64,000 bases of DNA from Laetmonice hystrix (GCA_965235115.1 OZ249438.1:13206001-13270000), one strand, 5' to 3'. Shown: positions 3,382-64,000, numbered from the stretch's first letter. Notes: a model not told the origin generated them from the letters alone. Translations and numbers: made by a program.

Positions 3382-3585
3382 GGGCCTGATCCACTAAGGC
3401 GATTTTCGTTGCGACGTCCATGCGATTTTGACCCTTTTATTTTACCCTGAGTTTGATATTAAAGGATGGACCCCATTTCCTGAAACGGAGAAGGCCAGTC
3501 AGGAAAGATTTCAGAGGGAAATTCCACCATTAAATCAAAAATCGCATGGCCGTCGCAAGGGGAATGGCCTGAGTGGATAGGGCCC
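3382..3585. mobile_element. GGGCC-ended MITE
   Basis: Imperfect TIR gggcctgatccactaaggc / gcctgagtggatagggccc with an internal inverted aaatcgcatgg segment. Confidence 0.55.
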
Positions 3586-4108
3586 AGCGTTTCCTTAGAG
3601 AACTCGCCGTATATCAGTGAGCTGTCGTTCCTTAAAACGGCTTCTGTCAGTAGGAGCTTGGTTAGTAGACGCTGGAACCTTTACAAAGACATCCCCCCTC
3701 TCCATCTCCTTTGCGGCTTATAAATGATTTCTCCAGTAGGCACTCCATCTGCAGAGGAGCCCGACACACCTAGTCGGGAGGGGGGGGGGGGGGTCCCAAT
3801 CTAGTTTGAGCTGGAGTGTATATGGTGGGTGTTTGGGGTATCGTCCCGCGCTGACGCCTTTAATATACAGACACTGGGCGTTCAGCGCCACGTGTTGTAG
3901 TAGTTGTTGAACAGTAGAGAGAGAGAGACAGACAGAGAGTGAGGCCCAGGGCGTCACAGCAGCGGCAGACAACCCTCACACACTGCGCGCTCCCTTCCCT
4001 CAGTGTCTTCCTCCAACTCTCCCCCTTCCCCGCACTCTACCGTCAATTGTCGACATGAAATTACCTCTCATCGCCAACCCGCTGACTTGCTGTCTTCATT
4101 CATTGCAG

Positions 4109-4145
4109 TGAGATCGACGAGGAGACAGGCATGTCGGATATCCAG
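4109..4145 (+). CDS. Calpain 37-nt exon at the end of domain III (xEIDEETGMSDIQ), phase 2 to 0
   Basis: cattgcag|TGAGATCGAC...ATCCAG|gtattg. The acidic EIDEE motif is typical of the calpain C2L/linker junction. Contains an in-frame ATG at 4131. Confidence 0.75.
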
Positions 4146-7100
4146 GTATTGTAACGTGCATTTTTATATTTTTGTCATCTTACGGGATCTTTGGGTTAAT
4201 GATGAGGGGTAGATCAGTTTTGGGGGGTGTATGTGTGTGTGTCTCTATACCCAGGTGCTAGAGTAGAAGCCGGTCGACATGTCGACGTTGTCTATCGCTC
4301 ACGCTGTCGTAGTTGCTATAGTCACCGGCCTCTAAAAGGTTTTAACCAGGCCGTCAAACCAGCATGAAGAGAGCACGGGGCTAGATTCACATTCACGAAT
4401 CACATTCAGTCCACTTTTTTTTGTTTCGACTGCTGTTATCGTTCTGTCGCTCTGTCTGTCATATATAGTGTCTGTCTCCAGTGATCCGTCCCCCTGTCCG
4501 TCTTATATAGTGTGTGTCTCCAGTGATCCGTCCCCCTGTCCGTCATATATAGTGTCTGTCTCCAGTGATCCGTCCCCCTGTCCGTCTTATATAGTGTCTG
4601 TCTCCAGTGATCCGTCCCCCTGTCCGTCTTATATAGTGTATGTCTCCAGTGATCCGTCCCCCTGTCCGTCTTATATAGTGTCTGTCTCCAGTGATCCGTC
4701 CCCCTGTCCGTCTTATATAGTGTCTGTCTCCAGTGATCCGCCCCCTGTCCGTCTTATATAGTGCCTGTCTCCAGTGATCCGTCCCCCTGTCCGTCTTATA
4801 TAGTGTCTGTCTCCAGTGATCCGTCCCCCTGTCCGTCTTATATAGTTTCTGTCTCCAGTGATCCGCCCCCTGTCCGTCTTATAGTGTGTGTCTCCAGTGA
4901 TCCGTCCCCTGTCCGTCTTATATAGTGTCTGTGTCCAGTGATCCGCCCCCTGTCCGTCTTATAGTGTGTGTCTCCAGTGATCCGTCCCCCTGTCCGTCTT
5001 ATATAGTGTATGTCTCCAGTGATCCGTCCCCCTGTCCGTCTTATATAGTGTCTGTCTCCAGTGATCCGACCCCTGTCCGTCTTATATAGTGTCTGTCTCC
5101 AGTGATCCGTCCCCCTGTCCGTCTTATATAGTGTCTCCGGTTGCATGTAGTGCCCGGTCTCTGCCACGGTTAAGCTGAGTGTCATCGATTACATCCAGGA
5201 ACAATACATTGATCTCATCACAAGAAACAGTACCATACCATATACATATATATACTACCCACCCTTCCGTTATCAATGAGAAGTTTGTACACCCTCTCTC
5301 GCCCCTTTTGTGGTGGGGCCAAGGATCGGTCATGTTGAACCGTGCCGTCATTCAATTAAAAGATACCTTGGACCTCGAATTTTATAACTTGTCCCGTTGC
5401 TGCCAGAATTCCACACACCCGTGTATGCGGGTGTCGGCCTATTGGTAAAATTATTTTGAAATTTGAAACTATTCCTGACAATACTAACAATAAACAATGC
5501 CCTTGTTCACTTTTGTATTACTGGAAAGTTTTCATTAAATCCTCGGTCAGATTGACACAATGACATGCGGGCATAATGGACACATGCAGGCATTTAGCCA
5601 GGCTGATCAGAAAATTGTAATTTATAAATATGAAATCGGTTGTGCGTCATTTTAGCATGTGGAAATTGGTAAGCAATTGTTTTCCACACGATTTCGTAAT
5701 TATTTAAGCACAATTCTTTGTGTAATACAAATTTTATATATATCAATACTCGCTGACACACCTATATTGTCAGACTACATGAAGACTACATTCAGTTACC
5801 ATCAAAAGACGAAGAAACAAACATAGCATCCCTAATAAGGAAACCCGACACGCTCCGGCATGTTCCCGGATGTAAATGCATCCTGGCATGCGCAGTAACC
5901 CCTGTATGTTGTCCGAACGCCAGAATGTTCTTTTGTCACGTTATGACGTCACGTTTGGTCGCGTCATTCAATCCAAACATGCGACAAAACAAGCGCATCA
6001 CGTTATCGTTATCTTTATGTTATTTATAGAACACCAAGGGGGACCACAGCACAGGGAAAACAGGGAAATTTGAAGAAATCTACAAAATGCAGGGGGAAAA
6101 CAGGGGGAATTAGGCGAATTCTAAAGGACATCGAATTATTGGATCAAATGGTGTTGGTTTGATTCAAGACGGTTGCCATATTTGATGAAAACGCCGATTA
6201 GCAGACTGACAGATCATAGGGAAAATTCATCGCAGTAGAGGGAAAACACAGGGAATTTGAGAATGTAATTTGTGTGGGTACCCTTAACATCGTCTCTCAC
6301 CGGTGTGAACGGTGGAAAAAAACACTTTTTCGTAAGGGAAATTCTTGGCATGAATATCCATACGATAAATTTCCGTTTTGGCGTAGCTGAATCTCTAACT
6401 AAGTACAAGTCGAGCATGAAATTCCACTCCAAGCTACCAATGTTTACGGTTGCCGCTATAACTATTAACCATTGTCTGCTATTTAAAGCGAGCGTGCTGT
6501 GATCCCTTGCCGTGAATCATTATGAGAATCATATCGCAATCTGATAGCTTCTGATTGTTCTGATTTCTTTATCTATGAAACTTCTGTTCTCCGGTTTCAT
6601 TGTATCTCTAACAGACACTCTTGGATTTTGTTTTTTTTCGTAGTGCCTGTTTGCATGCATGCGTTTTGAGCTTTGTTTTTTTTCCACTGTTTGGTCGTTT
6701 TAGCGCAAGCAGACCCCTTTCGTACCTGAGCCTCACTTTGGTTTGCCGTCACGCATGCTTGGTCAGCATGACAACCGTCCTCTCAACATCCCGGGCTATC
6801 GACCTGTAAGTACCCAAGGTCACCGCCAGGTGGTGTCCGTGGAGCTCTCTCCGAGGGGAGGGGTTTTTTATTGGACTTTCCGGGCTCTAACCATGGAACT
6901 GTTCCCTTACTAACTGTGGTACTGCCCTGCTTAACACTCATAATCCTTGCTAGATTGACAGTTGTATAGAATGTATTGTTGTATATATTATATTTCGCTT
7001 GAATTGCGTCGTTATTTTTAAAGGTGGTTAACTATTTGAACGTGGTGTTGGGAGGGTGGGGGTATCAAAGTATACCCAACGGTGTAGTTAATCTCTGGTC

Positions 7101-10100
7101 TTTATCGCGGACCTGGCGCTAGGCTCGTGTGCTGGACCAGTGCTAGCTGATATTGAGCTGGTACTGCAGTGTGTCTTGCTCCGGCTCGGTGGTAGTTCAT
7201 CTGTAAAGAAAGGAGAAAACACAGTCTTTGATGTAGAAAAAGGGCCGGGGTAGGCACTGTCTGGGTAGTCGTCACAAACACGTGACTGGTTGCGGCCAAT
7301 TATATTCTCTGTGACATAAAATGTGTATTTAAACTCGGATAAATATAAGGTTAAAACATTTTCATTCCGATAACGAATATTTTCACTACATTCTCAATCC
7401 TTGGCACAAACGGGCTTCCGTAGATATTGCCAACGTTTCATGTGAACGCTGCAACATGATCGCATTGATTCTGGTTGGACGATGGCGCCGGCATTCAAAT
7501 CCGAAATCGAGGCTGCTTCTCGATTTCAGCGTTTCTTGCCTGTCTAGCGGCATGGCGGAAACGTGGCATTATTCCCAGGGCATTGGGAATTCACAGATTG
7601 CGTTTGTGTTACTGATTAAAGGTGCGTGCAGAATTGTAATGTAAACCGGGTAGATCTTCTAACGACCTGGAATGGGGAGGGGAGTGGAGGACAGGGCCCG
7701 TTTTTTTTTGTTTACTTCTCCACCGTGAGCAAGGGTGAGCTGAGCTGAGCAAGGGTGAGCATAAGCTCATTCTCACCGTTTTCGCGTTTTTTTGGGGGTT
7801 GCTTTTTTCCATGAGGCGTGCTCATGGTGAGCAAGCTCGCGGAAAAACGCCCCAAAAAACGAAAACAGTGAGCAAAACGGTGAGCACGAGCTTCCGGTCA
7901 CCCTTGCTCAGCTCCGCTCACCCTTGCTCACGGTGGAAAAGTAAACACAAAAAAACCGGCCCCAGATGTAGCGTGTGGTTAGAGGTTAAGTAAAGTTGAC
8001 TTGATTTCGACAAGAGATGTTCCACAATACAGTCAGTACGGTTGTCTGTATGTGTGTGTGTGGGTGAGTGTGTGGGTGTGGGTGTGTTGTTAAGGATGTG
8101 TGAACCGTCCCTGCGTGAATGCGTGGTAGAGTATACGTGTGATTATAATTACAAGATGCCTATGTATAGGCTACGTCAGTAACTGTATATTGTTTTCTGC
8201 GTTCCATGTAGGTGGTAGAGTTGAAAGACGACGATGATGGTCGGGTAAGAACGACAATGCTCTGACCATGCTCTGATAAACTCTTGACCTTAACCCTGAC
8301 CTTCATAGGGCGCCTAAGTATGTCACGAGAATTCAAGAGATTTCGCGTTGTCGGGACAAGGAGCAGATAGCCTCGCTGGTTTAACATTGCGATGGCCATA
8401 GGGAACAGTGACAGTCAACTTTAAAATATTTTCATTCTGCAGTGAAGTCGCTGTTAATATTTAAACGTTACAATACATGATGGCTGGCATGTTTACTCTG
8501 GGATAAAGTTTGTTTTATAGTTTAGAAAGTTAGATTGTGAATATACGGGCTGGTTTTTGTAAGCCTGTCGGCCCTGTCAATGCTAATCCTATGGGAAATT
8601 TTTTGACGTCACAATCGCATGGCGCACGTTTGGTGCTATCGCGAGCTGGTTTGAGGCTATTTAACGTCATTTGCATAACCAGGTCACGAGACTTAGGCGC
8701 CCTATTGACCTTCATTCGCGTCTCTCAATGAAAGGGTCATTCCTCAACTTCTCATTCTACTCAGATAAAATATTTGACCTTTAACCTCCATGAATAATCT
8801 GGTTACTGTGACGGACAAGGTGATACGTTTTTAATTACTGGCTTTTGCTCCCATACCTTGTGAGAACACACCCTGTCTTGACTTGATATCACTCTAATTA
8901 TAGTAATTAAGTTAATTACTAGACGTACCAGAACTGGAAATTCTTTTCTGGTGTCGGCTACACATCCTTAGTAAGTTTATTAATGGACAAAACCAAGCTA
9001 CGTGTAGCAAACCGACATCGCTAATCCAAAAATTATCTCACCCAAGAACCTAATATTTCTAAAAATGATCTGCTGGTTTTTTTTTAAATATTTGCTTTGA
9101 AATTTTGATGAGTTTGCAAATTAATAATGTTCCTGCCAAGCATTTGAGCACGTTGTTTGGCTGATCGTTGGCCTGGAATACTGGCAATCAATTGCTTCTG
9201 ATAGGTCATCTACATTTTTACCCACAGTGATTTGATTTCGGTAATGAGATTACGAGGCATTTTGATAGAACACGTCACATGCCGTTTTCCATGTGATGTA
9301 TTGTATAATGAGTTTGACGACGCTTCCCGTTTTGATTTACAACCAGTTTCCCCACGTGCATGTCGTAGAGTATTTATTGGCTAACAGTAGCAGAGTCATC
9401 AAAAGTATCTAAAATATCCTGACAATGGATGCTAGTGCGTAAGTTGTTTTGCGAGTCGACGTTAAATCTGAGACCAGTGTAATATTTGGTGCAGACTTAC
9501 TTGTAAATGTTTTACATTGTAAATTTCAATGTTAAGTGATGTAAAGTGTGCAAAGTTGTGAAGGATGACGTGTGAGATGAAATCTATCGTGACCTATTTT
9601 CCTTTTCCGTTTCCTTTTCCACAAAGCCTTACTCACGACGCAATTTGTTGAATTTATCTTTCAGCTTGATTTGTTTGTTAATTAACATGTTTCACTTGTT
9701 GTTGAAATACTAAATCTGATGTCATTTTATTTTATTTGATGCAATGAACGTTATTTATTAATGTGCAGGGCTCGTGTTGGTCAGTGTTTGTCTTCCAGGA
9801 ACGAACGTTACGTCATTTTGCAGCAAAAACGTTACGTCATTTTGCAGCAAAAACGTTACGTCATTTCTCCCACCCCAAGCTATGATGACGACCGCGGTGG
9901 CGCCAAGGGCCGAGGAGGCCACTACTATGTCATCGGTGGTGGCGATGGGGGTGGTGGTCACAAGGGCGGTGGTGGTCACAAGGGCGGTGGTGGTCACAGG
10001 GGCGGTGGTGGTCACAAGGGCGGTGGCGGTATTGGATTTGAAGATTTTGGAGGAGGCGGCGGAGGTTATGGTGGTGGTGGCGGGTTTGGTGGCTTCGGAG

Positions 10101-13100
10101 GCGGCGGTGGCGGGTATGGTGGCTTCGGAGGCGGCGGTGGCGGGTTTGGTGGCTTCGGGTCCAGGTCCCATTTCGACACGGATTTCTTTTCAAGAGACTT
10201 TTCAGGCTTTATCTTCCAGGTAATTTCCCTTTCGCAAAACCAGTACAGTAAACCAAACAGACAAGGGAAGTGAGGTTTAAAACACAAGCAATCAGTGTAG
10301 TGTGTTTGACATATTACATGGAAGCATTTAAACCACTCTCCATGATGGACAATTTTCACTGGGTTATATTTATTTAAGGGCGATTATTTTTAACAGTGCA
10401 TTACGCAGTCGGCCGGAAGAGTTGTTTTCCTGACATTCTTCATTTAAAAAATAATTTGTCTTGTTTGAGAATAGACCGCATATTGCAGTCTATAGAGCGT
10501 TTGTGAAAACCGTAATTCATCGATTTCTATTAGAGGCAATGAAATTACGGATAAAAGGAGAGCCTTCTTTATACCTAACATCTGATTAAGAAAACAGAAA
10601 ACATGGAGGCCGTCACGTAATTATTGGAGGCCGTCACGTAATTATTGGAGGCCGTCACGTAATTATTGGAGGCCATCACGTAATTATTAGAGGCCATCAC
10701 GTAATTATTACAGGCCGTCACGTAATTATTGGAGGCTGTCACGTAATTATTGGAGGCCGTCACGTAATTTTTGGAGGCCATCACGTAATTATTGGAGGCC
10801 GTCACGTAATTATTGGAGGCCATCACGTAATTATTAGAGGCCGCTATGTACAATAATGTCCCTTCATTTTGTGTTATGGCACGAACGGGCTTCCTTAATT
10901 TTAGGAGAAATATGTCCGAAAGTCTCCGGGTTGCCTTGTCCAGTATTTAGATTTTCAAAATGCAGTATCTGATTATGTGCCGGTTGCAGGAACCCCCTGG
11001 GCCCGAGGCGGTCGAGGAGGGTATGAGACCAGTTGTGAGTACACAACTGTACTACAAGCCACATCGCTTGACAGACACTGCCATACTTACAAGTTGTATG
11101 TCTTGAAAGCATTGCGCCGACTGGCTTGATCTTGAACCTGCCGCGCTGGGGCCCACTTATCAACATCCTGTACGCCCTGTATATTCTGTTGCTGTGAAAC
11201 AATATGGCAGTTGGCCGGTTGCAAGAACATTTTGTGAAGTTAATCCCAAGAATGGCTTAACTTACTAACTAGCTTAGATGTAAGGTTGGGTATGGTTGGT
11301 AGTCATGTTTAACTGGATTCTATTGTGCTTGGGGAACGAAGTAAAGGCCAGCTTCCAAAAAAGACAAAAGGCTAAAAAAATTCTGACTTTCTGGTAACTG
11401 GGAAGAGGCGTAAATCTAAGGATTTGGTTAATCTCGAGACTAACTACATCCTTGGATCCGGCCAACAGTTGATACAGTAATTCTACTAAAACCGTATTCA
11501 TGGGAATTTAACAGACGTTTACTGGTTTCAGAAACCCGTTTCATGGCAACAGAAACGGGCTAGACAAGATTTCAAAGTTCAAACCAAAAAAAAAAAAAAT
11601 CAAAAGTTGAGACAGATAATTGGGCCCACCCTGTACCTCCGTGACGTTTTGGTTCCATCCGTCACTCAACCAACCAGCTATAGCATGAATTATACGATTT
11701 AATCTCACCGCACCCCCTCCCAGTATACTTCACAATAATCCTGTCTCCAATCCACCGTCTAATCCACCCACCTATCGGGCTATGTACATAATCTATCGCT
11801 AAACCCCTTAAGGCGATGCAGGAGTGTGAAGATTGCACTATCAGTGATCTCCTGAAGTGTTTGGTGTCGCAATATTTTACCGCCAGCGGCGAGGCAGCTG
11901 GCGAGGCATGATTCTGCGCATCTGCCGTTTTGTATACTTGGGGCCCCATTGTTGTTTTTTTTATATATATATTGATTAACATTGTCTTGGCAGGTGAGTG
12001 AGCTTGATGAGTTTCCTGCTAACTCAACGTTACGCCATTGGAGCTTTTGAACTGTTTGTGCTTTAGGGTCAGCCTCAGCACAAATGTGAGTAACGTGTTC
12101 ACAAAAAAGGAATGAAAAAGTTTGCGCCAATTTGGAAGTGTGAAAAGCGGGAAGATTAAATGGTATATTTAATGAATTACTAGAACAATGGTACTGATAC
12201 CGGTGGAGTATAATAGAGTTTTATGATATGTTTAAGCAGTTTTTTGCTGCAAAATGTACATAATATGAGTAACATCTTTATTGCAGTCATTAATGTCGGG
12301 TATAATTAATAGATATTAATGGTAATATGTAAATTACGTATTCATCTATATCGCACAATGCAGGGAGACGGTATAGCTTTCTGATTGCCTGACTTCAAGA
12401 ACAGCCAAACCTTTCATCAGCGCATCTCGATCTACTATAATGTATAAAGAATTTTCCGAACCCCAATCTGAGACATCGCTCCAATTCCAAGAACAGCGAC
12501 GTTCCCTATACATTCTCCTTTGACGAGAACAGTATTAATCCGCGCACTGATGATAAAGCAACATCCAGAGATTCGTACGGTGTTGTACTTCTGGGCCACC
12601 GTATAGAGTTGGGCTATTGTTGAAGTGAGGTATTCCATTATTGTTTCCATCTTGTGCCGTGTTTGACTCAAGTCTGTGTGGTCCACTGCAGAACGAGCCT
12701 CTACTGACTGCGATACACGTCGTAAGTAGAGTCGCCAGGCTGCAGACCAGCTCTGCTTTATCTTGGGTTCATTTGTGACCCTATATTAAAGACCCCGTAT
12801 AGCACAATGTCGTCGGGCCGACGTCGGTCCACTGGTGGCGAAGTTTGGCCGGGGTCATAATCCAGTTGCCGATTGAAAATTCCGACTGGTCGTTCGGCTG
12901 TTAAATGTAAAAGTTCCTAATACTACGTGCTCATGTACGCACCACAGGCCATGGTGGCTCGGAGATGGCCCAGCGACGGTGTGCTAAAGGATTCATCGTT
13001 GCTATATCAAAGTCACCTCCATCAAATTAATTGTTGTTTGCGAATTTTCTTTTTCTTGCAGTGCTACATAATTAACAGTTCGTGGACAGCAGATTTTCTA

Positions 13101-16100
13101 CTAATACCCCAGCAAGCATCAGTTAATATCCCGTTTCTTGTACACAGCCGTGACATTTCCAGACACTTTATTTCTTTTCTTAATTTTTTGCTTCCATCCG
13201 TTTTAAAAGCTGGCTTGCGTTACATTTGCATGCCTTCGCTTGCAGGCCGGAATTAAAAGAATATACGGAAAAATTAGAAAAAGAAATGTAAGATGTAGGA
13301 TTATCAAGAACAGTGGTAATTGATCGTGTACTTAAAGATACGATGCCCTCAAAGTACATTCAGTACTTTAGTAAAGAGTGCAATCAGGTATTTGTATTTG
13401 TCACCAATAAGTGCAATGCGACTTGAAAATTAGGAAGAGTTAAAAACCTGGTTGTTTTGTCGGTGTGAGCCATTAGGTGAAAAAACCAGCTTAGTCCTGT
13501 CGTTGAGAGAGTAATTAATATTAAAATTCATGAGGGGGGGACTGGATTTTACGTTTTGCAATGGTTTCAGGTTAGTTATTTTTCAAAATTATTACAAATC
13601 GAGGTCCAGTTTGCATTGGTTGAATGTTTGGCTTATATTACAAAGTCGTACCATTCTGTTGTGTTCAGCTTTTCACCGTCATATTCAGTTGAGACGCTGA
13701 TTCCTAGCGTTTTCATATTTTGTTTCACTGATTTGCTTGGTTCTTCCGCCCAAGGCACACTGCCAGCATGTCTTTAAGTTTAAGTTGACATTTTTCAAGT
13801 AAAGTTACCTGGTTGAATTCAATATCTGGCGCTGGTGTTGCTGGGGACCAGTCGAATGATAGCAACGTACATTTTAAGTGAAACATGTTCAGACAGTCGA
13901 ACATACGAAAGTAGATAACTGGATAACGGCGATTTTACTAAATTTAAAGCGATCAGAAATAGGAAATATCGATTTAAACGTTCCACTATGGCTACTAGAA
14001 GCTAGGACAATTGGAATGGGGTTAAAATACAGTGGCGTATCCAGAAATTTTTTAAGGGGGGGTATCCGAAGTTTAGGTACTTCAGAGATGGCCATTAGGC
14101 CATGGTTCTCTGGGAAATTTAAAAAAAGACATGAAATAATGCAATCTCCAGACATCTTGTGTGGAAATATTTCCTTTGGTTAAACTAATGCATTTTACAT
14201 CCCCTTTTTTACCAAAATGTTCTTAATATAGTAATTCTTTTAAGGGGGGGGGGGGGTCCGGAATACTTGGGAACCCCCTTGGATACGCCACTGAAATAGG
14301 TCATGCTGAGGGCAAAATTTAGGGGTTTATTATTTGCCACGTTTTGATCTTGTGGTTTATTTGCCGATCATTGTTTTCTCTAAACTCTCAGGCTCCAACA
14401 GGGGAGACGACGGTGGTGCCTGTTGTGAGTACAAGGTTTTACTTTTAAACGATCTCAAATATTAAAGGTGTTTCTTTTCTCCGTACACGTCTATATTTCT
14501 TTTTCAGTAAACACGTTGGAGTAAATGTAAGATTAATACTTTCCACACAGAACGAGAAGAAGTTGAAAACAAAGGAAAAAAATTCGGATGTGTTTATAAA
14601 CAATGTTATTGTCCTTACTGTGCGAAAATGGAATGTTTGTAAATGTTTCTTTTTGCCAATCCATTTTGTGTTTTTAACATGGTGTTTAAAACTAGAGTGA
14701 TGTAAGCTGATGCTTGTAATGTCCATGTGGTAGGAATTGTCACGTTTTCCCATTGGACCTCCAGGTTTCAGAACGTCTGACAACGAAATATAAAGTGAGT
14801 ACGCTCTGGCCCGCCCCCTGGTGACCAGTGTTGGCGTCACAACACCCCCTGCGTCTTTTAGCTGACACATATTGTAAACACGTTGTTTTCAGCGAAGTTT
14901 GTTCCGTTTTCTTGCATTGCTATAGAACCCGGTGAACGGCCTTATTAAGAGAGGCACCGACGCAAAAGAATGCAAGCTTGGAGAACCTTTCTCGGAGTTT
15001 GCAAGGCTAGCTAGCACATGTTGGGTTTGTGGCTATGACGGACTTGGGATTTCTTGTATAGCTGTGATTATTCTAAACCTTTGAATCTGAAATGCTTTTT
15101 GAAAATCATTTGATTTCCTAACAATACTAAAACAAAATCCACCCGCGTGTTTTCTTGGGAAAACGATGTACACAAAAGCCTGTGAATGTGCTTTCCTCGA
15201 ACATTGCACTTGCACGCAGGCGTTTTTATCCTGGTTTGGTCTAAGTGATTGAGCTCTTGCTCAAGTGTAGTTTTGTAGTAAATATCCGCGTGGAAAAGAG
15301 ACGGTCAACTGATTTCAAACTATTGGTTTCAAGTAAGACTGGATAAAGCTCGTACATCGGACAATAGTTGCGCTTGCGCTGTTGATATTGGCAGCTACTA
15401 AAACACTTGCTAATTGAACATCGTGTGAGACTTAACGATTTTCCTTGCAGCCCCCAGTGTTAGCCGATATTTTTGTCGTATTTTAATCTAGCCAGTGCCA
15501 AACCGTGGATAACCTACTGGAGATCGATGTGTGAAGATCAAACTCGTCGGATCAAGGGATTAACATTCTTTTACACTTCCTAAATTGGTGATAATCTGTC
15601 AATGCCAGCAAGTGAGGATGGGTTGTAGGTTACCGTCAATACGTTCTAAGGTATCGGGAGGAGGAATTAGTAATGTCGTCAGTGGAGATACAGGGTGTGC
15701 CAATATGTCCACGCCAAGCCAGGCAACATAAGAATCTATGTTCCCCCGGATCCCGCTGGGGAATCTTCCTACATGAAAAACAGTCTTTATTTTATCAAAA
15801 TCAGTCAAGCGAATCAAAAGTTATGCCATTTTTAGTGCAGCAAAGTCACACCCTAGTTTGTTAACTAGATCTCATTATCTGGCAGCTAGAACTGGTCACT
15901 GTAAAAAGAGACAAATACTTTGCTCCACCAAAAAAGTACAACTATTTTGTTGCTTGACTGATTTTAATGAATTAAAGACTATTTTTCATGTAAGAATTTC
16001 ACTATCAGGATGGGGGGGGGACATAGGTTCTGAAATTGCCTAGTTTGGCCTGGACTTTTTTTTTGGCGGACACCCTGTATTATTGGGACGAGTTTTGTAG

Positions 16101-19100
16101 TAGATTTTCTTATTTGATCTACGTACCTAATTTCCTTCTTGGTCGATAGTTTCTCTGTCCGCTGTCTCTGTTCTTTTCTTCGCCCTATCCTATATTATCT
16201 GTTAATCACGATTTATGAAAGTGGCAAGCAATGAAGTGAAACCATGTGAATAATTGAGTATAGGATTGGTTAGATGGTGTGTGGTTGTGGTTGGTATGTA
16301 TGCGAGGATGAGATTTGTGGAGATATAATTATAAATGTGAAGTGTCGGAATGGATGTGTGGTACTATTTTGTGTAGCGGTCTCGGAAAGGGTGTTATGCG
16401 TGATGTATAATATATATCAGTGCGCCAGGGATGAATGCTTATAAATGGGGTGTTATAATAGTGGTGCCACGACATTGTAATGGCGCTGAAACGATTCATG
16501 GTAACGCATGCATTGTCTGGCCATGACGGATCACTGCGGGGGGCAAGGTCCGCGAGCCCCCTTCGTTTGGAGAGATTATACCACTTATTTCGCGATATTA
16601 TTTTTGACGGTGTGAGGTAAATGGAAAAAAAACGAGAGCAACGTCTCTGAGAGAAGATGAACATTGATATGCTAGGTAGAGTCGTGTGTGGGCAGAGTGG
16701 ACCCAAACTTGAGATTGGACAGGTCGGATGGCTGGGAGTCGGGCTCGAGTGTAATGCACACTCCCTTGAGCGTGCAATATATTCTTGTCCAGGGCGCCAG
16801 AGTTATCAGAGGTCCTGCGTTTCCACCGTCGGCAACTGTGCAATATTAGGCAGGGCTTTTTATGATAGTAGTATATGCAATTGGGATTTATTGTCGGGCT
16901 GTGTATACGTCGAGGGCCAATTTTTCACGTTTTGAAGGTGGCCCGTTTTTGGCCAGACAGCGGGGGTAGAGATTAGGTATTAAAGGTGAAATGTCACGCG
17001 GACAGGTCAGTGACTCGATCGGGAGTTGACATTTCCAAGGCGCTTAGCCTTGCTAACGACCGGCCTTGGAAAGTGATTTATTTATACCCCCAACCAACAC
17101 CTTAAAAAATGGAACTCGGCGACTACGTTGAAAGATACACTAACTGTAAATGTACATATTATACTCTAAGCTATAGGCCTATAACTTAGACAGTTTCCGC
17201 TTAGACTGGCATCATACATTTGTAACTGTCCCATGAACTAATTTGTAGAAAGCCACTAACAAGGCACCTGTCGGCCAATACTCGAGCAAACTTAAAGCAT
17301 TTATCGTCGCTGAGTGGTGAATTCATTGCAAGACCGTCAGTGGCTAACGTACGTCGGGTTGCTATGGTTACAGCCGACGGCGGAGTTAACCGAAGATGAC
17401 GTCAGACAGGATCGCGACATGCGCGAGGCGTTCAAGAAAATCGCCGGGGAAGATATGGAGATCGACGCCTACGAACTGCAAGACATTCTGAATGCTGCCT
17501 TCATGAAAGGTAATGGCTCTTATTTGTCATTTTCTTTATTTTTTATTTTATTTTTTATTATTATTACTAAATCGGACCCCTTTTCAATGGAAATTTGGAA
17601 AGTTAATCTTACATGTTCAGGGAGCCTTGACGATTTACCTTTTGAAATCACTAACCCTTATTTATTGTTTTAAAAGAGCGCAGGTGTGCCCTGTTTGCCG
17701 TTTTCTTGGTTTTTAATCCCCCTGTAATCGTCCCATGACATGGCATGAAACATGTTTGAAATTTGACTTTTGGATGACCGTTTTTATTCTGTTAGAATGC
17801 GCATTTTGTATGGATTAACCCACTTTGTTGACTTTTTTTTTAAATCGTCATTTTGAGGATGGTGAATGAGAATGTAAAAAAAATCCTCACTGTTGATGCT
17901 TTGAGTTTCCAGCCAACGCATTTGATAGCATTTTGACAAATATTACTAATGGCAAAAGAAGTCCGCATATACCAATGAATATTTTCCCCCTTCAAAGTTG
18001 AATTGTAGCTATGTCTTTTTGGGTCTTTTTTGTACTATGACCTTTGAAGTATTTATACAGTTTTTGACTATCTCTCTCCTATCCACTTAATGTACATAAA
18101 AAAACGTTTATTGATTTCATATTTGACGATCAGTCAGTCTTGAAAGAATCTAAAATAAGAACAGTAAAATTGAAGACCCCATACATGTATATTAATGAGT
18201 AATCAGTCTGTAATAATTGTCCCTCATCCAAGCTATTTGTGTTGGTTCCCAGTGTTTAAGACTTGTCGTCATCGAGCGGCAGTTTTTTCTTACAGTTAAC
18301 AGTCACTCGGGCAGCTTACAAACAGGCTGTCATTGATCTATCCATGTCTGCCTTCTGTATGTCACTTTGTAATCAGACCACAGGGCCGGATCCAGGTGGT
18401 CCGACCCCCCCCCCCCCTCCTTTGCGTCTATTTTCCTTCAAATACACCTTCTTGACTTGACTTTTTCCCCTCAGAATTCCGTGATAGTCTTCCCTTTTAC
18501 ACCCCCCCCCCTTTCAAAATCCTGGATCCGACTCTGATTGCCCGTATCTTGTGTTCACCGCACAGCAGGCTACTGGTCCCACAATGTTTCACATAGTCTC
18601 ATCAAATTGTTTATATATGTACATTCGGACTCGACAAGGGTTTGCCCACACATTATCAACCTTCATGTGTTACGTAAGGTCAAAAGGTCGAGTAGAATTC
18701 AAAACACCCATTTGATCATTTTTATCTTCTTTTTGTTCGCTTTTATTTTATTTTTAGAGTGCTACAGATATCACAATTAACATGAAATTTTGTACCAGAT
18801 CCCGATGATATTTGTACTTTGTCGTTCTGTAAAGGAACAGTTGTTGTACAACAACGTGAACTGTCTGTAATCCGTGATAAAAATGACCAGTTCCCGTGCA
18901 CACGTCACTTCCGGTTTTCGGACAAGAGCAGTCGGGAGCAAGACTGCGACGTGGCGCGTGATTCAAATTTCCAATATTTTTACAAAGTGTTACTTTCTGA
19001 GAGAATTTATCAGAAAAACCTATCCCGGACACGTCTACAACTCACAGTGATCTCTCTAGATCAGTAAAGGTGCCTATGTGATGTCTGTAGCACTTTAAAT

Positions 19101-22100
19101 ACTGTATATTCTGTATATTTATTTTGCACTTTGAAAAATAAAATTTTGAATTTGTAAAAAAAAACTCGATTACATAACTGACCTGCTGACACAGCACGGA
19201 GGGTAGCTAATGTTGGATAAGCAGATTATCTAAACCAAAGGGATCTTTTAATGGACAAATACAGTGCACTCTGCTTTAATTTGACAAACTTTAGAACGTG
19301 TGATAATTGCAAGAAAAAAAAACCTGGCAGAGTGCCAGGAGATAAACGGATGTTTTCACGTCTTCAAGCGACCTTTTGGTTTTCCCCCCTGCACCGCTCG
19401 CCCACAGTTCCCGGCGTGGAGTTGTCACTAATTTGTCATGGTGTTTTTCATGTGGCTCTACCGACAGCAAGAGGTAAAATTTGTGTGTTTGCATCGGAGG
19501 AAGGACGCTGCCTAGCTTTCCCATGCTGCCCCGCAGACAGACCACTAACACCACCTTGCGGCCAGCGGTGGAAGCTGTGGCTAGCGTTTGGGAATGCAAC
19601 GGCACTTTTGATTGGTTCCCGTCACTGGCTTTATGCTCGCGTTGCTTGATATATAAACGTATATCGTGATGAGCATTATTATTTGAATCACTGTATCTGG
19701 TATATAGTGTTTATTACTAATGTTAGTCAACGTCTTTATTTGTTCCCTTTTCCCTACTGTCACTGGGCTTGTTGCATGCGGGGGTATAAGATATAAAATA
19801 ATATAACAATAGGCCTATATTATATCATATAGGCCCATAAATCATTATACACTCGAAGACAGTCAGCAAATGTAAAATTTGGGAAAGATTGGGGAGGCTC
19901 CTACCCGCAAATTGTGCTTGTAGGTCGTCCCAAAGTGTACATCTTGTCCCAAAGTTTTAGGCCAAGCCATTAAAAAGATGAGGTGCAACCTAAACTTTAC
20001 ATTTCAAACCCGTCATATGCTGCTGCTGCCTGCACGAAGGCAGCTGTGCCTGTGTTGACTGTTGGGTCCCTGTAACCGTATGTGCAGTACATGTTTGGGG
20101 GCTCCTTAAAATTGTAGAATTATAAAATGCAGATTATTTGGTTTATAGTCAGCAGTAAAAAGTAAAAACATTTTGGGTATGACGAAAGAGTTTCAGCATA
20201 CTACGGACCGCTTTGAGCTTTCTGGAAATGCAAACGTATTGAACTGTTATTTTATTGGAACCAAATTTGATATTCCTTACATCTTTTTATACACTGTTCA
20301 CATAAATTCTTTACCTATTTGTTTTTCGAAATTACATCACAGCGTATACTTTTTCCTAGACGTGCTTCATATAATGATATACCACTATGCTCTTTTAGAA
20401 ATTCACAGTACGTCATCAAGTCTAGCATTCCCATTGCTTTCTTTCAATCTTTCTTACAGTAAGCAAAGCAAATACGCAAAATTCACAGCATTCTTTAGTC
20501 CTGTGTTCTGTAATGTAGGACTCTTAAAGGATATGCTGTCATGTAGGACTCTTAAAGGATATATCTGCTGTCATGTAGGACTCTTAAAGGATAAATCTGC
20601 TGTCATGTAGGACTCTTAAAGGATACATCTGCCCGTCTGTGTTTTGATATCATTAGCCGCTGTTTTCTTTAGGGACTGTGACAGTAACGTAAGGATTGAC
20701 ACATAAGGGAAAGTGATCCGCGCCCTGGGCATGGCATGGTGTGGTATAATTAATGAAATCTATATTTAGAGGCACACGTGATATTCAGGGGGGAGGGTTG
20801 GTGATACGATTTGTGTCATTCTGTCCCTGCCCGCCTATAGGAGAGAAACGCATGAATTACTGTTTGTTTTTTAATATATCGATTGCTTCAGTGGTAAGAA
20901 GTTTTAGATCTAAGCAAACATTTGTCGATAATCTTGAAAGAGAGTCAGTGCGACGTTTATATATAGAACCTATGTACTGATATATATTAGAAGTTTGACC
21001 GTGAGAATTTGCATGTTGACCGTCAGGCAGAACTGTTGGGTCGTGTGTATTACGATTTGATGTCGTTAGACAGATGTAAAGTACTTGGGACGTCTTGGAG
21101 TTATACATTGTAGCTGTGGCGATGTCCCCTTAGAATCCCCCCGCCCCCGCTGCACCCGTTGACCTCTCTGTGACCTGACGTCAAGTCTCGACACTGTACA
21201 TCGCTTTATTCCTCCGTGGAGAAATCGAACGATATTAGGGATAGCGGCTAGGGTTAGCGACAGGTTGGAGTGTGGTAGAGAATTGAAGAAATTTCCATGG
21301 AGGCCACAAGCCAGGGCCTAGTTCCTAACAACTTAAGATCTTGCTTAACGCTCCGATTGGCTGGTCTAAACAGAGCAGCCAATCAGTAGCGTTAAGCATA
21401 GACTTAAGCAAAATCTTCAGTTTTTAGGAACTGGGCCCAGGCCCCGGTTTTTAGTTCGTCATTCGTAAGACTGGAATTTTAAGACTGACTTGCGTTATGG
21501 TCTCTCATTGGCTAACTTCATTTGAAGGACCAATCAGAAGCTCTGAAACAAGAGTTCAGTCTTAAGATTTGAATCTTAAGACTCGGTTTGCAAACTTAAA
21601 ACCAGGGCCAGGTGTCGAGCGTTGATCGCAGGTCACTGTGTGAATCGTTCTGTCTACTCCCAGTGATGGCCATGCCTTTGGGTGCCTTAGGCACTGGTCG
21701 CCATTATGACCTATGAACTGAGGTCATTACTGGAGGATTGTGACCTGGTCCGAAAATGTTTTGTTTTTGTGTATATTTTTATAACCTGCCGTATAGACCT
21801 ACATACCTGTAACTGTAGCTATGCGGGTACAGTAGTCTGTTGGTACAGAAAGTGTTCATACACCGCAGATACCTAGAATTCTCTATATTGGCTACTGCCT
21901 GGTTAGGGTAACGTGTAAATAACATTTTAATATGTATGAAAAATAACATTTTAATATGTACTCGGAAAGCATGCAACACACAGGGATAAATCACCTAGGA
22001 TTGAATGTATGGGTATCGGGCACGCACGTCACTAAATAATTAATAAAAGAACAATTGCAGCCGACCCCCCACCACCACCACCAAAAAAAAAAAATGAGCG

Positions 22101-25100
22101 CGTTCTCTGAGCGGAAGTTCCCAGTAGTGAGCATCTCGTGACGTCATGGCTGGAGGAGCAGCGCAGTACCCCCAACAACACCGTCCCCTCCTTCCTCCCC
22201 TCCGCCCCTCCCCCCCGCCCAGCCCAAGCCCTAACAACGTACTCCACATATAGAGATGACAGCATGTGGCTACATACAGATAGTGCTAACAGTTAGAATC
22301 ACTAACAGGACACTCGGCAATCGTTCCAATGCCAACCATCAGCACTTAATATCGGAGTGCTTAAGTGCTTTTTTTGCAATAGAAATAATAATGGAACAAG
22401 TATGATGAATTTAGCGCACTGCGCTCGAGAAATGTGAAATGATTGGAGATACTGCAGCCAGTGGCTGTGACATTTATTCAATTTACATCCAGGAAATTTC
22501 TCAGTATATTTCCAAAATGTCTGTGTGGTTTGATGGTTGGAATGGAATCTTCATTTACTAAGCCATATTTGTACAGAGAGTAGCAATGAAGTAGTCTTGA
22601 GAAATATATTTAAAGCACACAGGAGGAATTGAAACACCACCTCTAGACATAGTGCGGAGATGCGGACTATAGTCGCCCACCCTGACATTCGATGTTGTGT
22701 AGGCCTAATAAATTATTATTCCTTTTTTTCACTTCGAACTTTTAGAAAATCTGGGAAACCAAAAAAAGGGGGACGTTATATGAATGTCTGTTTGTTTTAA
22801 AATTGAAAATATTCTGGAATTATTCCCGTAAACGATATCGAATTTTCTGTACTTACATTTAATTTTTGATTGCATTCCTAAGGCATATCTACCTACTCAT
22901 ACATGTAATCTAACTTTAAGACATAGCCTCATTCAGTAATATAACAGTGAATGTTAGGACATCAGTATAGTTTCACATATTTACGTCGAAGCCGAGTAAA
23001 AAATCTAATGACTACTTGCTAATGGCAAACTCAACTATGTCTGCCCTGACCATTGCGAATTCAGTGGGAAGTTTTCTTGGTGTACTGTATGTTTTGTTCT
23101 TCACGACGCAGCGTCACCATGCACGGTGCGGTGGCACCTCAGTGCCCCCTATCGGCAGGTACCCGTACCATGGTGAGTTTGGGGCCGTACCTAAGGGGCG
23201 AGCGTTGATTGTGGTTTCATGTCGTTTTGCAGAATTCAGGTTTGATGGATTCAGTGCGGAGACGTGTCGCAGCATGGTGGCCATGATGGATGTATCCTTG
23301 TACCGTTAGAAGGGGAAAAGGTTTTAAGAAGTCTTGTTTAGTTCCTCTTTCGTTTTAAATTAAAGAAGCACCGTCTAAACTTCGCACGTGCCCCAAAAGA
23401 TTTACAGGACCAGTGTATTCGTGTCGTCAGTTTGTTTCAAAATGCTTTGATCTGACCTTCAACGCCGTGCTTGTCTTGACCTTGCTGTGCCCTCATGCTG
23501 AAGTCGTAGTCCAGTGGATCCATAATTTTGTCCCAGTGTCCCATTCCAACCCTTCATTAGAGTTAAACCTTAACTCGGACACAGATGGATCGGTCAGGTA
23601 GACTGGGATACGATGAGTTCAAGAAACTATGGGACGACCTACGTCTGTGGAAGGTATGTCAGGCGACGAGTAACACCAGGGAATACCGGTACAGAAAGGG
23701 GTTCATGGAGGGGGGGGGGGGTATGACAGAGGCCAGCTGAGTGGTGGAATGGGTTCCGTCGCCTATGAGGAAGGACTCCTGATAGTGTTCCAGTAGATTC
23801 ATGTACATACGATATCATATAGACTGCACTTCTAAATCTTGGTTGTTCCTCAATAGAAAACGTCTCCAGAACATGAACACAACCTATATCATATGTCGTA
23901 CTGAATCAATTACTTGTTTATTAATTTATCCTATTAAATTCACTGATTGTACATTAATAGATTAGGGACATGTCCTGATTTGGGATACATTTTCCGTTTC
24001 AGAGCGTTTTCAAGCAGTTTGACAAGGACAAGAGCGGAAACTTCAACAGTTACGAACTTCGCCAGGCCTTCCATGCTTCAGGTACGATCGACTTACTCCC
24101 AGATATACTTATCCTGGGCTAACCCTCAGTCAGGGCTACGCTTTATTATTTTTTTTAAATTTTCCAAGTTCCATGATTTCATGCCAAGCTAAACCTGCTC
24201 CCCACCCCCTTTTGCCTTGAAGATGGCCTTGGATGCCGACATGGCGTAAAAACCGCCATTTCTCACTCACTCGCGTGCCCTTGTTGCGTTAGTCTCTCTA
24301 ATGCGGGATTTCCACCGGACGCGAGCGAGCGATTTGTTTTGGTGCGCACGCTCGCGTCAAAAGTAGAAATCGTTGAAGTGATTGCAGTAATTTCCACCAG
24401 ACGCAAGCGCGGCATGATGTGTGCGCACGCGTCTGGTGGAAATTACTGCAATCACTTCAAAGATTTCTACTTTTGACGAGAGCGTGCGCACCAAAACAAA
24501 TCGCTCGCTCGCGTCCGGTGGAAATCCCGCATTAAGATAATCTGAAGACTATACAAATAATATTTAATGCCGCCTACATCTAATAGATGGTATTACGCAA
24601 TATATACAGTGCACTTAAACTAAGTAAGAGTTAGAGGCCACACGAGCCGTGACTGACGCGAACAGTAAACCTACAAGGACCTGGCACCCATTACCGAATA
24701 CATTGTAATTGTTTTACCAACTACTAAACAGGTTTTAGCGTCAGCAACGCAACGTTCAACGCCCTGGCACAGCGCTACAGCCACCGGGACGGCCGCATCT
24801 ACTTCGATGACTACATTCACTGCACTGCCCGTCTCCGGACCATGTTTGGTGAGAACATCTTCTCAGGGTCAGGAGAAATTGAGGGAATTTGATGTTATGA
24901 CCACTGAGTTTTTATCTTTGCTCACATCTAAGGTGTGTTTTCATGGCCCGTGGCAATCTTCAGTTTAACGTTTCTGCATGGCCCATTTAAATTGTTTCGT
25001 TTTGTGAGTGCCGTTTCAAAGTGGTACTTGTTGTATTCAGATATCTTCAAGGAGACTGACGAGGCTCGGACGGGCAAGGCGGCCTTCTCCCTGGATCAGG

Positions 25101-25502
25101 TCAGTCAGATCCTGTTACGCAGAAAGAATATGTAAATCTTCATTATGTAAAGAAGTTCTTGAAATGTCAGGGAAAGTCACGCAGTTTCGTCAAATGTAGG
25201 AGAAAATGAGTGAAAGCCAGAGAAGCTACGGATCAAGTTTCTCTAGTCCGGTCCAAGCTGTCGGAAAACGGAACATGTGGGGTCACGGATCTTGAATGAC
25301 AACAACCCATGTCTTGGTCATTTGTGTACTGGATACGGACAAGAAGGAGAGACCAGGAAAAGGAATCAGTTTTCTAATGTAGATAGAACCAGAAATATGG
25401 GAAAACAAACTTGTGAACCGCACTCATCTTGTCCATTCGTGAACATGACACTAATGATACATTTTGATGTTACAGTTCATCCAAACAACGATGTATTCGT
25501 AA
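4109..25502 (+). CDS. Classical calpain large subunit, 3' part (C2L-domain end, linker, penta-EF-hand domain); 5' exons outside window
   Basis: Core exons 4109-4145, 17374-17509, 23233-23291, 23585-23653, 24003-24081, 24732-24848, 25041-25099 and 25476-25502 all have AG/GT ends and join in frame: EIDEETGMSDIQ|PTAELTEDDVRQDRDMREAFKKIAGEDMEIDAYELQDILNAAFMK|EFRFDGFSAETCRSMVAMMD|MDRSGRLGYDEFKKLWDDLRLWK|SVFKQFDKDKSGNFNSYELRQAFHAS|GFSVSNATFNALAQRYSHRDGRIYFDDYIHCTARLRTMF|DIFKETDEARTGKAAFSLDQ|FIQTTMYS*. Exon sizes 69/79/117/59 match those I recall for vertebrate calpain PEF exons. Confidence 0.93.
4461..5136. repeat. 42-bp minisatellite, about 16 copies
   Basis: Unit tatatagtgtctgtctccagtgatccgtccccctgtccgtct. 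Confidence 0.95.
6704..6805 (+). CDS. Calpain linker cassette exon, 102 nt (RKQTPFVPEPHFGLPSRMLGQHDNRPLNIPGYRP)
   Basis: T-rich tract ending gtcgttttag| ... CGACCT|gtaagt; length divisible by 3; no stop in phase 0. Confidence 0.65.
7694..7962. mobile_element. Palindromic GGGCC-ended MITE, CAG flanks (Harbinger-like CWG TSD)
   Basis: Long imperfect inverted arms (tttactt..ccaccgtgagcaagggtgagc / gctcacccttgctcacggtgg..aagtaaa). Confidence 0.7.
8212..8244 (+). CDS. Calpain linker microexon, 33 nt (VVELKDDDDGR)
   Basis: tgttttctgcgttccatgtag| ... GGTCGG|gtaaga; phase 0/0, open. Confidence 0.65.
8932..8970 (+). CDS. Possible calpain linker microexon, 39 nt (NWKFFSGVGYTSL)
   Basis: gtaccag| ... 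TCCTTA|gtaagt; phase 0/0, open, but weak polypyrimidine tract. Confidence 0.35.
9848..10219 (+). CDS. Gly-rich cassette exon, 372 nt / 124 aa (QKRYVISPTPSYDDDRGG...(GGGGHK)n...GGFGG...FDTDFFSRDFSGFIFQ)
   Basis: Strong donor ATCTTCCAG|gtaatt at 10219/10220 in phase 0 of the Gly-rich ORF. In-frame acceptors cattttgcag| at 9823/9824 and 9847/9848. The exact 5' end is uncertain (phase-2 acceptors also exist at 9768, 9798 and 9879). Confidence 0.7.
10604..10843. repeat. 21-bp minisatellite, about 11 copies
   Basis: Unit ggaggccgtcacgtaattatt. Confidence 0.95.
10990..11034 (+). CDS. Calpain linker microexon, 45 nt (EPPGPEAVEEGMRPV)
   Basis: gtgccggttgcag| ... CCAGTT|gtgagt; phase 0/0, open. Confidence 0.6.
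12692..12721 (+). CDS. Calpain linker microexon, 30 nt (NEPLLTAIHV)
   Basis: ggtccactgcag| ... CACGTC|gtaagt; phase 0/0, open. Confidence 0.6.
14030..14293. mobile_element. MITE with 14-bp TIR CAGTGGCGTATCCA (hAT-like ends)
   Basis: cagtggcgtatcca ... tggatacgccactg; no clear TSD. Confidence 0.65.
14392..14424 (+). CDS. Calpain linker microexon, 33 nt (APTGETTVVPV)
   Basis: tgttttctctaaactctcag| ... CCTGTT|gtgagt; phase 0/0, open. Confidence 0.7.
14765..14794 (+). CDS. Calpain linker microexon, 30 nt (VSERLTTKYK)
   Basis: cacgttttcccattggacctccag| ... TATAAA|gtgagt; phase 0/0, open. Confidence 0.6.
15451..15477 (+). CDS. Possible calpain linker microexon, 27 nt (PPVLADIFV)
   Basis: Strong acceptor cttaacgattttccttgcag| but weak donor |gtattt. 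Confidence 0.25.
17374..17509 (+). CDS. Calpain PEF exon (EF1)
   Basis: ttacag|CCGACG...ATGAAAG|gtaatg; AFKKIAGEDMEIDAYELQDILN is the calpain EF1 motif. Confidence 0.93.
18381..18536. mobile_element. Short MITE with CAGGGCCGGATCCAGG-type TIR
   Basis: cagggccggatccagg ... cctggatccgactctg, with poly-C internal tracts. Confidence 0.55.
18758..19094. mobile_element. TTAA-type (Kolobok-like) MITE
   Basis: 18-bp TIR agtgctacagatatcaca / tgtgatgtctgtagcact; flanks ttag / ttaa. Confidence 0.7.
20512..20630. repeat. About 30-bp tandem repeat, about 4 copies
   Basis: Core gctgtcatgtaggactcttaaaggata. Confidence 0.85.
21314..21610. mobile_element. Two adjacent GGCC-ended palindromic MITEs
   Basis: gggcctagttcctaa...ttaggaactgggccc (21314-21438), then gccccggttttta...caaacttaaaaccagggcc; the second family recurs at 60452-60562. 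Confidence 0.7.
23233..23291 (+). CDS. Calpain PEF exon (DGFSAETCRSMVAMMD)
   Basis: ttttgcag| ... GAT|gtatcc; phase 1 to 0. Confidence 0.93.
23585..23653 (+). CDS. Calpain PEF exon (EF2, 69 nt)
   Basis: gacacag|ATGGATCGG...TGGAAG|gtatgt. Confidence 0.93.
24003..24081 (+). CDS. Calpain PEF exon (EF3, 79 nt)
   Basis: ccgtttcag|AGCGTT...TTCAG|gtacga; FDKDKSGNFNSYEL EF loop. Confidence 0.93.
24205..24272 (+). mobile_element. Possible SINE 3' tail fragment
   Basis: ggatgccgacatggcgtaaaaaccgccatttctcactcactc resembles invertebrate SINE tails ending in (CACT)n; from recall only. Confidence 0.25.
24299..24534. mobile_element. Near-perfect fold-back MITE (Harbinger-like, TAA/TTA flanks) in a calpain intron
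   Basis: taatgcgggatttccaccggacgcg... / ...cgcgtccggtggaaatcccgcatta; arms of about 110 bp with few mismatches. Confidence 0.85.
24732..24848 (+). CDS. Calpain PEF exon (EF4, 117 nt)
   Basis: ctaaacag|GTTTTAGC...ATGTTTG|gtgaga; RYSHRDGRIYFDDYI. Confidence 0.93.
25041..25099 (+). CDS. Calpain PEF exon (EF5, 59 nt)
   Basis: gtattcag|ATATCTTC...GATCAG|gtcagt. Confidence 0.92.
25476..25502 (+). CDS. Calpain last coding exon (FIQTTMYS*)
   Basis: gatgttacag|TTCATCCAAACAACGATGTATTCGTAA; resembles the calpain C-terminal WLxLTMYS* motif. Confidence 0.88.
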   Translation, partial: FIQTTMYS

Positions 25503-48004: not shown

Positions 48005-63972
<15,968 letters not shown>

Positions 63973-64000
63973 GTAAGGAATTGTTCGATTTCTCCAGTTT

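Follow-up and report, generated by a model that had tools for sequence, protein, structure and literature searches.

We analysed a 64,000-nt stretch of the genome of the annelid Laetmonice hystrix (GCA_965235115.1, OZ249438.1:13206001-13270000, i.e., G000:C3:13206001-13270000; hereafter the window, from whose first letter all positions are counted, negative positions lying upstream), which holds part of a calpain gene. The 13.2-kb interval separating the last exon of the C2-like (C2L) domain from the first exon of the penta-EF-hand (PEF) domain most probably contains a conserved array of cassette exons, all of them frame-neutral, by which the linker between the two domains is varied, at least four of seven candidate segments being true exons. 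One of the seven, exon A, is certain, because a deep contig joins it precisely to the exons on either side. A modular array of symmetric cassettes had been proposed in a preliminary description made from the sequence alone. That proposal is borne out by the splicing of exon A in RNA and strengthened by putative counterparts of candidates B, D, E and F in related worms and by the combinatorial use of such modules in molluscs, whereas the novelty that it attributed to an array of this size did not survive comparison with published and database material.

Host gene and candidate exons

Identifying the gene that hosts the interval required 50 kb of additional upstream sequence. The protease core and the C2-like domain are encoded by exons spanning positions -34876 to -2551, and the PEF domain by exons from 17374 to 25502, with the terminal peptide FIQTTMYS encoded in the last exon (25476). 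The catalytic exon (L005:9344-9601) matches PF00648 (Peptidase_C2, E = 4e-40) and contains the GDCW motif. Searches by tblastn with three calpain proteins (P0064, P0113 and P0013) recovered C2L exons (-7944 to -2551) followed by five PEF exons (17374-24848) in collinear order. The complete exon chain is alignable to calpain-B-like proteins, and identity to the mollusc proteins compared is 55-61% over 13-15 exons. Judging by the domains it is predicted to encode, the host gene is a classical, PEF-containing calpain large subunit; we infer that it is orthologous to the mollusc calpain-B-like genes, on the basis of best match and common layout, including the E-exon motif and the PEF1 exon described below.

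The interval, its two boundary exons and the candidate segments are as follows:

4109-4145, + strand: E-exon, the C2L-side end (EIDEETGMSDIQ), whose gtattg donor opens the phase-0 interval
6704-6805, + strand: exon A, 102 nt, 34 aa, Pro-rich; splice sites and RNA contig
8212-8244, + strand: candidate microexon B, 33 nt, VVELKDDDDGR, acidic; borders and putative counterpart in related-worm contig L010
9848-10219, + strand: candidate Gly-rich low-complexity exon (Gly exon), 372 nt, 124 aa; acceptor ttgcag, donor gtaat
10990-11034, + strand: candidate microexon C, 45 nt, peptide ending in RPV; borders, frame and CCAGTT 3' end
12692-12721, + strand: candidate microexon D, 30 nt; borders, and first of a trio of 30/33/30 nt
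14392-14424, + strand: candidate microexon E, 33 nt, peptide ending in VPV; borders and putative counterparts in L010 and L011
14765-14794, + strand: candidate microexon F, 30 nt; borders and putative counterparts in L010 and L011
17374-17509, + strand: first penta-EF-hand exon (PEF1), whose acceptor closes the phase-0 interval
8932-8970, + strand: weak candidate, 39 nt; borders and frame only
13246-13287, + strand: weak candidate, 42 nt, basic; found by an objective scan only and absent from the preliminary description
15451-15477, + strand: weak candidate, 27 nt, with the poor donor gtattt; borders only

Every candidate segment lies within 4146-17373, i.e., between the last C2L exon and the first PEF exon, and all were re-checked by script within 3900-18000. 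For the seven principal segments, the script reproduced the features from which the array had been proposed, namely a YAG acceptor, a GT donor (GTRAG in the six short ones), a length divisible by three and an open phase-0 frame, as well as their combined coding capacity of 215 aa. All seven are frame-neutral, having the same phase at both ends and no stop, such that any of them could be included or skipped without consequence for the frame. The genome contains one copy of exon A, and at B the DNA depth in run X1 corresponds to a single copy. A transposon origin of C, D, E and F was rejected because each of them is also single copy.

Exon A in an abundant transcript

RNA evidence came from run X4, whose contigs were aligned on positions 6660-12659, a range that covers A, B, Gly and C, with D, E and F outside it. 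X4 derives from the same sample as the DNA runs, comprises 59 million letters of contigs and is not catalogued as RNA. Its small size, its content of 94% of the 3'-UTR words and its not being listed for the intron-rich region 9800-15799 suggest that it is RNA-derived, as does the spliced contig that it later yielded. This contig is 2358 nt long with a depth of 116, and within the aligned range its sole match to the genome is 6702-6805. Immediately before this match the contig reads the last 30 letters of exon 4109-4145, and immediately after it the first 30 letters of the exon at 17374. Since 4145 is thereby joined to 6704, and 6805 to 17374, exon A is a genuine exon of an abundant transcript with exactly the predicted borders, and the observed form contains A alone, in the order E-exon, A, PEF1. 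The preliminary description had considered that a direct 4145-17374 junction, if seen exclusively in all tissues and together with segments no more conserved than the flanking intron, would refute the array; the junction observed runs through A. DNA run X1 and the genome are collinear at exon A. Because that exon is single copy, we rejected the possibility that the spliced contig stems from a processed retrocopy. The interval between 4145 and 17374 is more than a single intron and needs to be modelled as several introns, and for annotation purposes exon A belongs in the main transcript.

Within exon A, at position 6759, the X4 RNA contig carries C where the genome and a DNA contig from the same sample carry T, which changes Leu to Pro. 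The RNA contig probably represents the other allele, which the DNA contigs have lost; ADAR-type editing was rejected, the change being T-to-C.

Other X4 contigs, at 7734-7822, 8322-8705 and about 11211, were examined as possible calpain exons and rejected as transcripts of high-copy repeats. Such repeats occupy positions 7680-7960, 8305-8705 and about 11211-11420, with X1 DNA word depths of up to 280,000, and are transcribed in X4; one of the three has long inverted arms and is MITE-like.

Conserved blocks in related worms

Three contigs of European Nucleotide Archive (ENA) metagenome assemblies (L009, L010 and L011), found through protein searches with the catalytic exon and PEF1, come from related worms. 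Their calpain exons are alignable to those of L. hystrix at 74-84% nucleotide identity and their introns are unalignable; therefore, any conserved block inside the interval is informative. The PEF1 peptide is 78% identical to that of L010, and the closest relative by PEF1 is P0151, with a 91% identical exon. Counterparts of the E-exon were located at about 17986-18020 in L009, at 2770-2805 in L010 and, in a scallop genome sequence (L013), at 38056-38091. In L010, PEF1 lies at about 10030, so that this contig presents the whole layout from E-exon to PEF1.

At L010:6042-6071, a 30-nt segment encoding VVEIKDRRGR is directly preceded by AG and directly followed by gtgaga; by its sequence and its identical splice borders it is the predicted counterpart of B. 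Just upstream of PEF1, L010 has three microexons of 30, 33 and 30 nt (8069-8098, 8437-8469 and 8580-8609), which are 80-87% identical to their equivalents in L011 and retain canonical splice sites within surrounding intron that cannot be aligned. D, E and F repeat these sizes in the same order (30/33/30 nt) and are likewise the last cassettes before PEF1. Specifically, E, L010:8437-8469 and L011:8003-8035 agree in size, position and terminal Pro-Val codons, with GTRAGT following E and its L010 counterpart, and F agrees with L010:8580-8609 and its L011 equivalent in size and position as well as in a Glu at position 3 and a Tyr at position 9. The examination of the orthologous interval that the preliminary description had recommended provides putative counterparts for B, D, E and F. 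At its 3' end, C (CCAGTT, then gtgagtac) matches E, L010:8437-8469 and a 72-nt scallop cassette described below. A long low-complexity exon is also present in L010, where 471 nt (3442-3912) form a phase-0, stop-free, P/G/Y-rich analogue of the Gly exon. In addition, a Logan transcript contig of another species (L012) contains a 39-nt microexon spliced to PEF1.

Exon A had no counterpart in L009, L010 or L011; a 'PPPHFG' match to it in L011 proved not to be an exon. No match to A-F was found in the 3 kb examined of the L009 interval, a stretch that stops short of PEF1. The weak candidate at 8932-8970 had neither an RNA contig in X4 nor a clear counterpart.

One further block is conserved between the related worms, at L010:7191-7234 and L011:6914-6956, extending from a GTGAGTAC donor about 40 nt into the intron, while the preceding 15 nt are not conserved. 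One possibility is an intronic splicing element that adjoins a microexon of 15 nt.

Linker modules in molluscs and other known systems

A search with the oyster protein P0064 retrieved series of mollusc isoforms, all of them automatic RefSeq (Gnomon) models. These series run to X29 in Ostrea edulis, to X22 in Crassostrea virginica and from X1 to X18 in Mizuhopecten yessoensis, and further series occur in Haliotis, Biomphalaria, Mytilus and others. The isoforms vary by whole modules immediately after the E[ML]DEETG..Q exon. In the scallop, modules of 21, 24, 18, 5 and 49 aa give 15 distinct linkers among the 18 RefSeq isoforms, and in the genome (L013) the E-exon and PEF1 enclose an interval of 14.8 kb with the corresponding phase-0 exons, which measure 63, 72, 54, 15 and 147 nt. 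The mollusc models are the best-matching homologues and have the same layout as L. hystrix, consisting of E-exon, cassette array and PEF1. They are, however, automatic and represent no described system, and most of their cassettes are unalignable with those of L. hystrix. The similarities that we noticed concern individual segments. The 72-nt scallop exon ends in CCAGTT before its GT donor, as do C and the L010 counterpart of E, so that the scallop cassette and the L. hystrix segments C and E all end in Pro-Val codons. C weakly matches a scallop linker, and the peptide across the junction of D and E (TAIHV, then AP) resembles TPIHVAP in a Babylonia linker.

In the oyster isoforms P0183-P0248, the last C2L segment also varies (LLRIFTEKANETNE vs LLRLYTEQCAHSHE), which suggests that exons immediately before the linker array are mutually exclusive.

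In vertebrates, calpain-3 (p94) has an alternatively spliced insert, IS2, at the C2L-PEF boundary of a classical calpain. IS2 differs in that it is made of two exons without an array and is restricted to the vertebrate muscle paralogue, and no sequence similarity between IS2 and the L. hystrix segments was found. IS2 probably arose independently of the linker array.

The closest published system is the Aplysia californica calpain AplCCal1, in which cassettes a, b and c of 14, 4 and 5 aa lie between C2L and PEF (Hastings et al. 2017, PLoS One 12:e0186646, PMC5650170). These cassettes were cloned from nervous-system cDNA, their use was treated as potentially independent, and together with an alternative N-terminus they allow up to 16 variants, for which no functional difference among inserts was reported (PMC5650170). 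AplCCal1 resembles L. hystrix in having short, alternatively spliced cassettes in the C2L-PEF linker, but has three of them against seven or more candidates in L. hystrix. Moreover, it belongs to a mollusc rather than an annelid, and its description includes neither a long low-complexity exon nor a genomic or comparative analysis of the array.

The preliminary description knew of no calpain array this large; with three AplCCal1 cassettes published (PMC5650170) and up to 29 oyster isoforms in RefSeq, that statement does not hold, and an arrangement of this kind is already known from the Aplysia paper and the RefSeq models. In the literature on calpain microexons and on oyster calpains, we found no paper describing the array comparatively. 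What is new here is, first, an annelid member of the linker-cassette system with one RNA-proven exon; second, putative elements common to the worms, namely B and the 30/33/30 trio, whose Pro-Val-ending exon resembles a mollusc cassette; and third, a candidate for the long low-complexity exon that is almost pure Gly.

Array or chance pseudo-exons

One alternative to the array is that only A is real, in which case the interval would be made up of just two introns, with B, C, D, E, F and Gly as chance in-frame pseudo-exons, open by accident between an AG and a GT. We used first-order Markov simulations of the intron as a null model and counted donors with an in-frame, stop-free YAG partner 27-105 nt upstream. 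The + strand has 11 such segments, where the simulations gave 5.4 ± 2.4 (P about 0.02); the - strand has 2. GTRAGT occurs ten times on the + strand of the interval and four times on the - strand. GTRAGTA donors number six, against 1.9 expected by simulation (P about 0.02), and five of these six adjoin segments named in the preliminary description. The sequence pattern by itself is only modestly above chance, and the verdict therefore rests on the RNA and the orthologues.

Several results weigh against the array, some of them also favouring chance pseudo-exons. By the simulations, about half of the segments satisfying the loose features listed above for the seven candidates are expected as accidents, and segment length modulo three is flat (21/18/23) over all pairs of strong acceptors and GTRAG donors, i.e., not enriched for multiples of three. 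RNA support in L. hystrix is confined to A. X4 has no contig on B, Gly or C, with the limit that contigs show presence and not absence, as rare variants are dropped, and no form skipping A was seen, so A could be constitutive. Peptide similarity to the microexons of the relatives is also weak: on the peptide alone, B matches L010 with E = 0.4, and the peptides of D, E and F show little similarity to those of the proposed counterparts, the support for these three consisting of size, order and terminal codons. Finally, the long low-complexity exon precedes the B counterpart in L010 but follows B in L. hystrix.

Chance pseudo-exons would nevertheless leave unexplained why a segment in L010 has the same borders as B, and why the 30/33/30-nt sizes, the order and the Pro-Val codons of D, E and F match microexons that are constrained between L010 and L011. 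Likewise, five of the six GTRAGTA donors flank candidates, and mollusc orthologues demonstrably use such arrays. We consider it improbable that A is the only real exon and favour the cassette array. Among its members, B is very likely a true exon and D, E and F are each likely ones; for Gly and C, each taken singly, the evidence tips only somewhat towards a true exon. The segments at 8932-8970, 13246-13287 and 15451-15477 are unlikely to be exons.

The Gly-rich segment

Apart from His, Lys and Phe, the predicted peptide of the Gly exon is almost pure Gly. A 24-nt tandem duplication supplies the exon with another in-frame acceptor, at 9824, and this length, like the internal repeat periods of 18 and 30 nt, is a multiple of three. 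A protein search with its reading frame was dominated by low-complexity candidates and gave no usable match. Comparable blocks are found at the linker of other calpains. Isoforms of Mya, Ruditapes and Sinanodonta have low-complexity inserts of about 230-260 aa, which are G/P/Y/Q-rich as opposed to the nearly pure Gly of L. hystrix, and a calpain-A-like isoform of a ladybird has a Gly/Tyr/Pro-rich tail after C2L and no PEF domain. One-to-one orthology of the Gly exon and the 471-nt exon of L010 is doubtful because their order relative to B differs.

In the vertebrate calpain small subunit (CAPNS1, domain V), a Gly-rich, hydrophobic low-complexity block stands directly before the PEF domain, and other PEF proteins have Gly/Pro-rich N-terminal tails. 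The Gly exon would supply a block of this type at the same place, with the difference that it would be optional and located inside the large subunit; homology to domain V is not demonstrable for low-complexity sequence of this type. The segment could also be read as something other than a cassette, i.e., as a small-subunit-like product with an internal start (Gly-rich block plus PEF) or as a nested, independent glycine-rich gene. This reading is in line with a stop-free frame extending over 9740-10270 with an in-frame ATG, with a stop located 51 nt after the proposed donor and with a composition that recalls domain V. Against it stand the good, duplicated acceptor, the GT donor, the length divisible by three and the coincidence of the Gly frame with the calpain phase 0, together with the symmetric, in-frame 471-nt low-complexity exon in the L010 interval and the mollusc isoforms that hold such inserts within a full-length large subunit. 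No RNA contig lies on the segment in either reading, and no data favour a separate Gly-rich product over a cassette. We regard such a product as very improbable.

A more far-reaching idea is that an optional Gly-rich exon before PEF is old in classical calpains and was the source of vertebrate small-subunit domain V. It draws on the comparable optional blocks in the related worm, in bivalves and in the PEF-less ladybird isoform, and we deem it highly unlikely. If it were true, the small subunit would have arisen from the 3' half of a large-subunit gene (low-complexity cassette plus PEF), and the invertebrate cassette would let the large subunit supply the domain V function to itself, isoform by isoform.

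Putative regulatory motifs

Neural microexons that depend on Srrm (eMIC) proteins measure about 3-51 nt and have a UGC motif close upstream of the 3' splice site. B to F, with lengths of 30-45 nt, fall within this size range, and TGC occurs at most 15 nt upstream of B, C and D, and not of E or F, although the motif is too short for significance. Regarding the occurrences already pointed out in the preliminary description, TGC precedes 8212 by 14 nt and 10990 by 12 and 5 nt, and the TGCATG reported before exon A was found as two overlapping copies 47-51 nt upstream of 6704. The latter form part of a cluster:

6653-6770, + strand: Rbfox-type GCATG cluster of four copies, at 6653 and 6657 (upstream of A) and at 6753 and 6766 (inside A)

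The whole intron contains 20 copies of GCATG vs 11 expected. The cluster at exon A is the one statistically notable regulatory signal of the interval, with a putative Rbfox function.

Proposed mechanism and significance

We propose that the spliceosome includes or skips phase-0 exons in the interval, such that the reading frame of the flanking domains would never be disturbed, and that each included exon would add 10 to 124 residues to an unstructured linker between the C2-like and PEF domains. B to F would be used in L. hystrix, and the choice among exons may be independent and tissue-regulated; seven freely chosen segments would allow the 128 combinations given in the preliminary description. 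Linker length and composition (acidic B, Pro-rich A, the Gly-rich block) might in turn tune partners, localisation or the coupling of the domains, and the preliminary description also named Ca2+ activation as a possible target.

The arrangement probably predates L. hystrix, as related worms and molluscs have the same layout of E-exon, cassette array and PEF1. Because the worm, its relatives and molluscs all carry a mini-exon array at the point where the domains are coupled, the variable linker is probably no annotation noise but an old feature of classical calpains in lophotrochozoans that has been selected. Calpains cut their targets upon Ca2+, and how PEF is coupled to the protease core plays a central part in their control. 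The array would offer a natural series of linker variants for testing (i.e., acidic, Pro-rich, basic and Gly-rich low-complexity), with Ca2+ sensitivity, dimerisation, membrane or condensate association and substrate choice as possible read-outs.

Other features of the locus

Two minisatellites lie in intronic sequence of the interval, one at 4452-5136 with 16.5 copies of a 42-nt unit and the other at 10604-10843 with 11.4 copies of a 21-nt unit.

Upstream of the window, the 5' part of the catalytic-Cys exon (GDCWLLAA...SFRD) is repeated in tandem 4.4 times with a 139-nt period at L006:8410-9016 (positions -31590 to -30984), 11 kb upstream of the real exon, and the repeated units have an acceptor-like flank and a GTGAGT donor-like flank. 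One further copy is located directly before the real exon, at L005:9194-9343 (about -20806 to -20657), and P0002, from a related worm, contains three copies of such a repeat. These copies may be decoy or pseudo-exons, or alternative exons.

Downstream, the next gene on the + strand (48000-64000) encodes an EMAP-like (EML) WD-repeat protein in many exons. Two successive, similar series of EML exons suggest either a tandem pair of genes or one long, multi-repeat EML.

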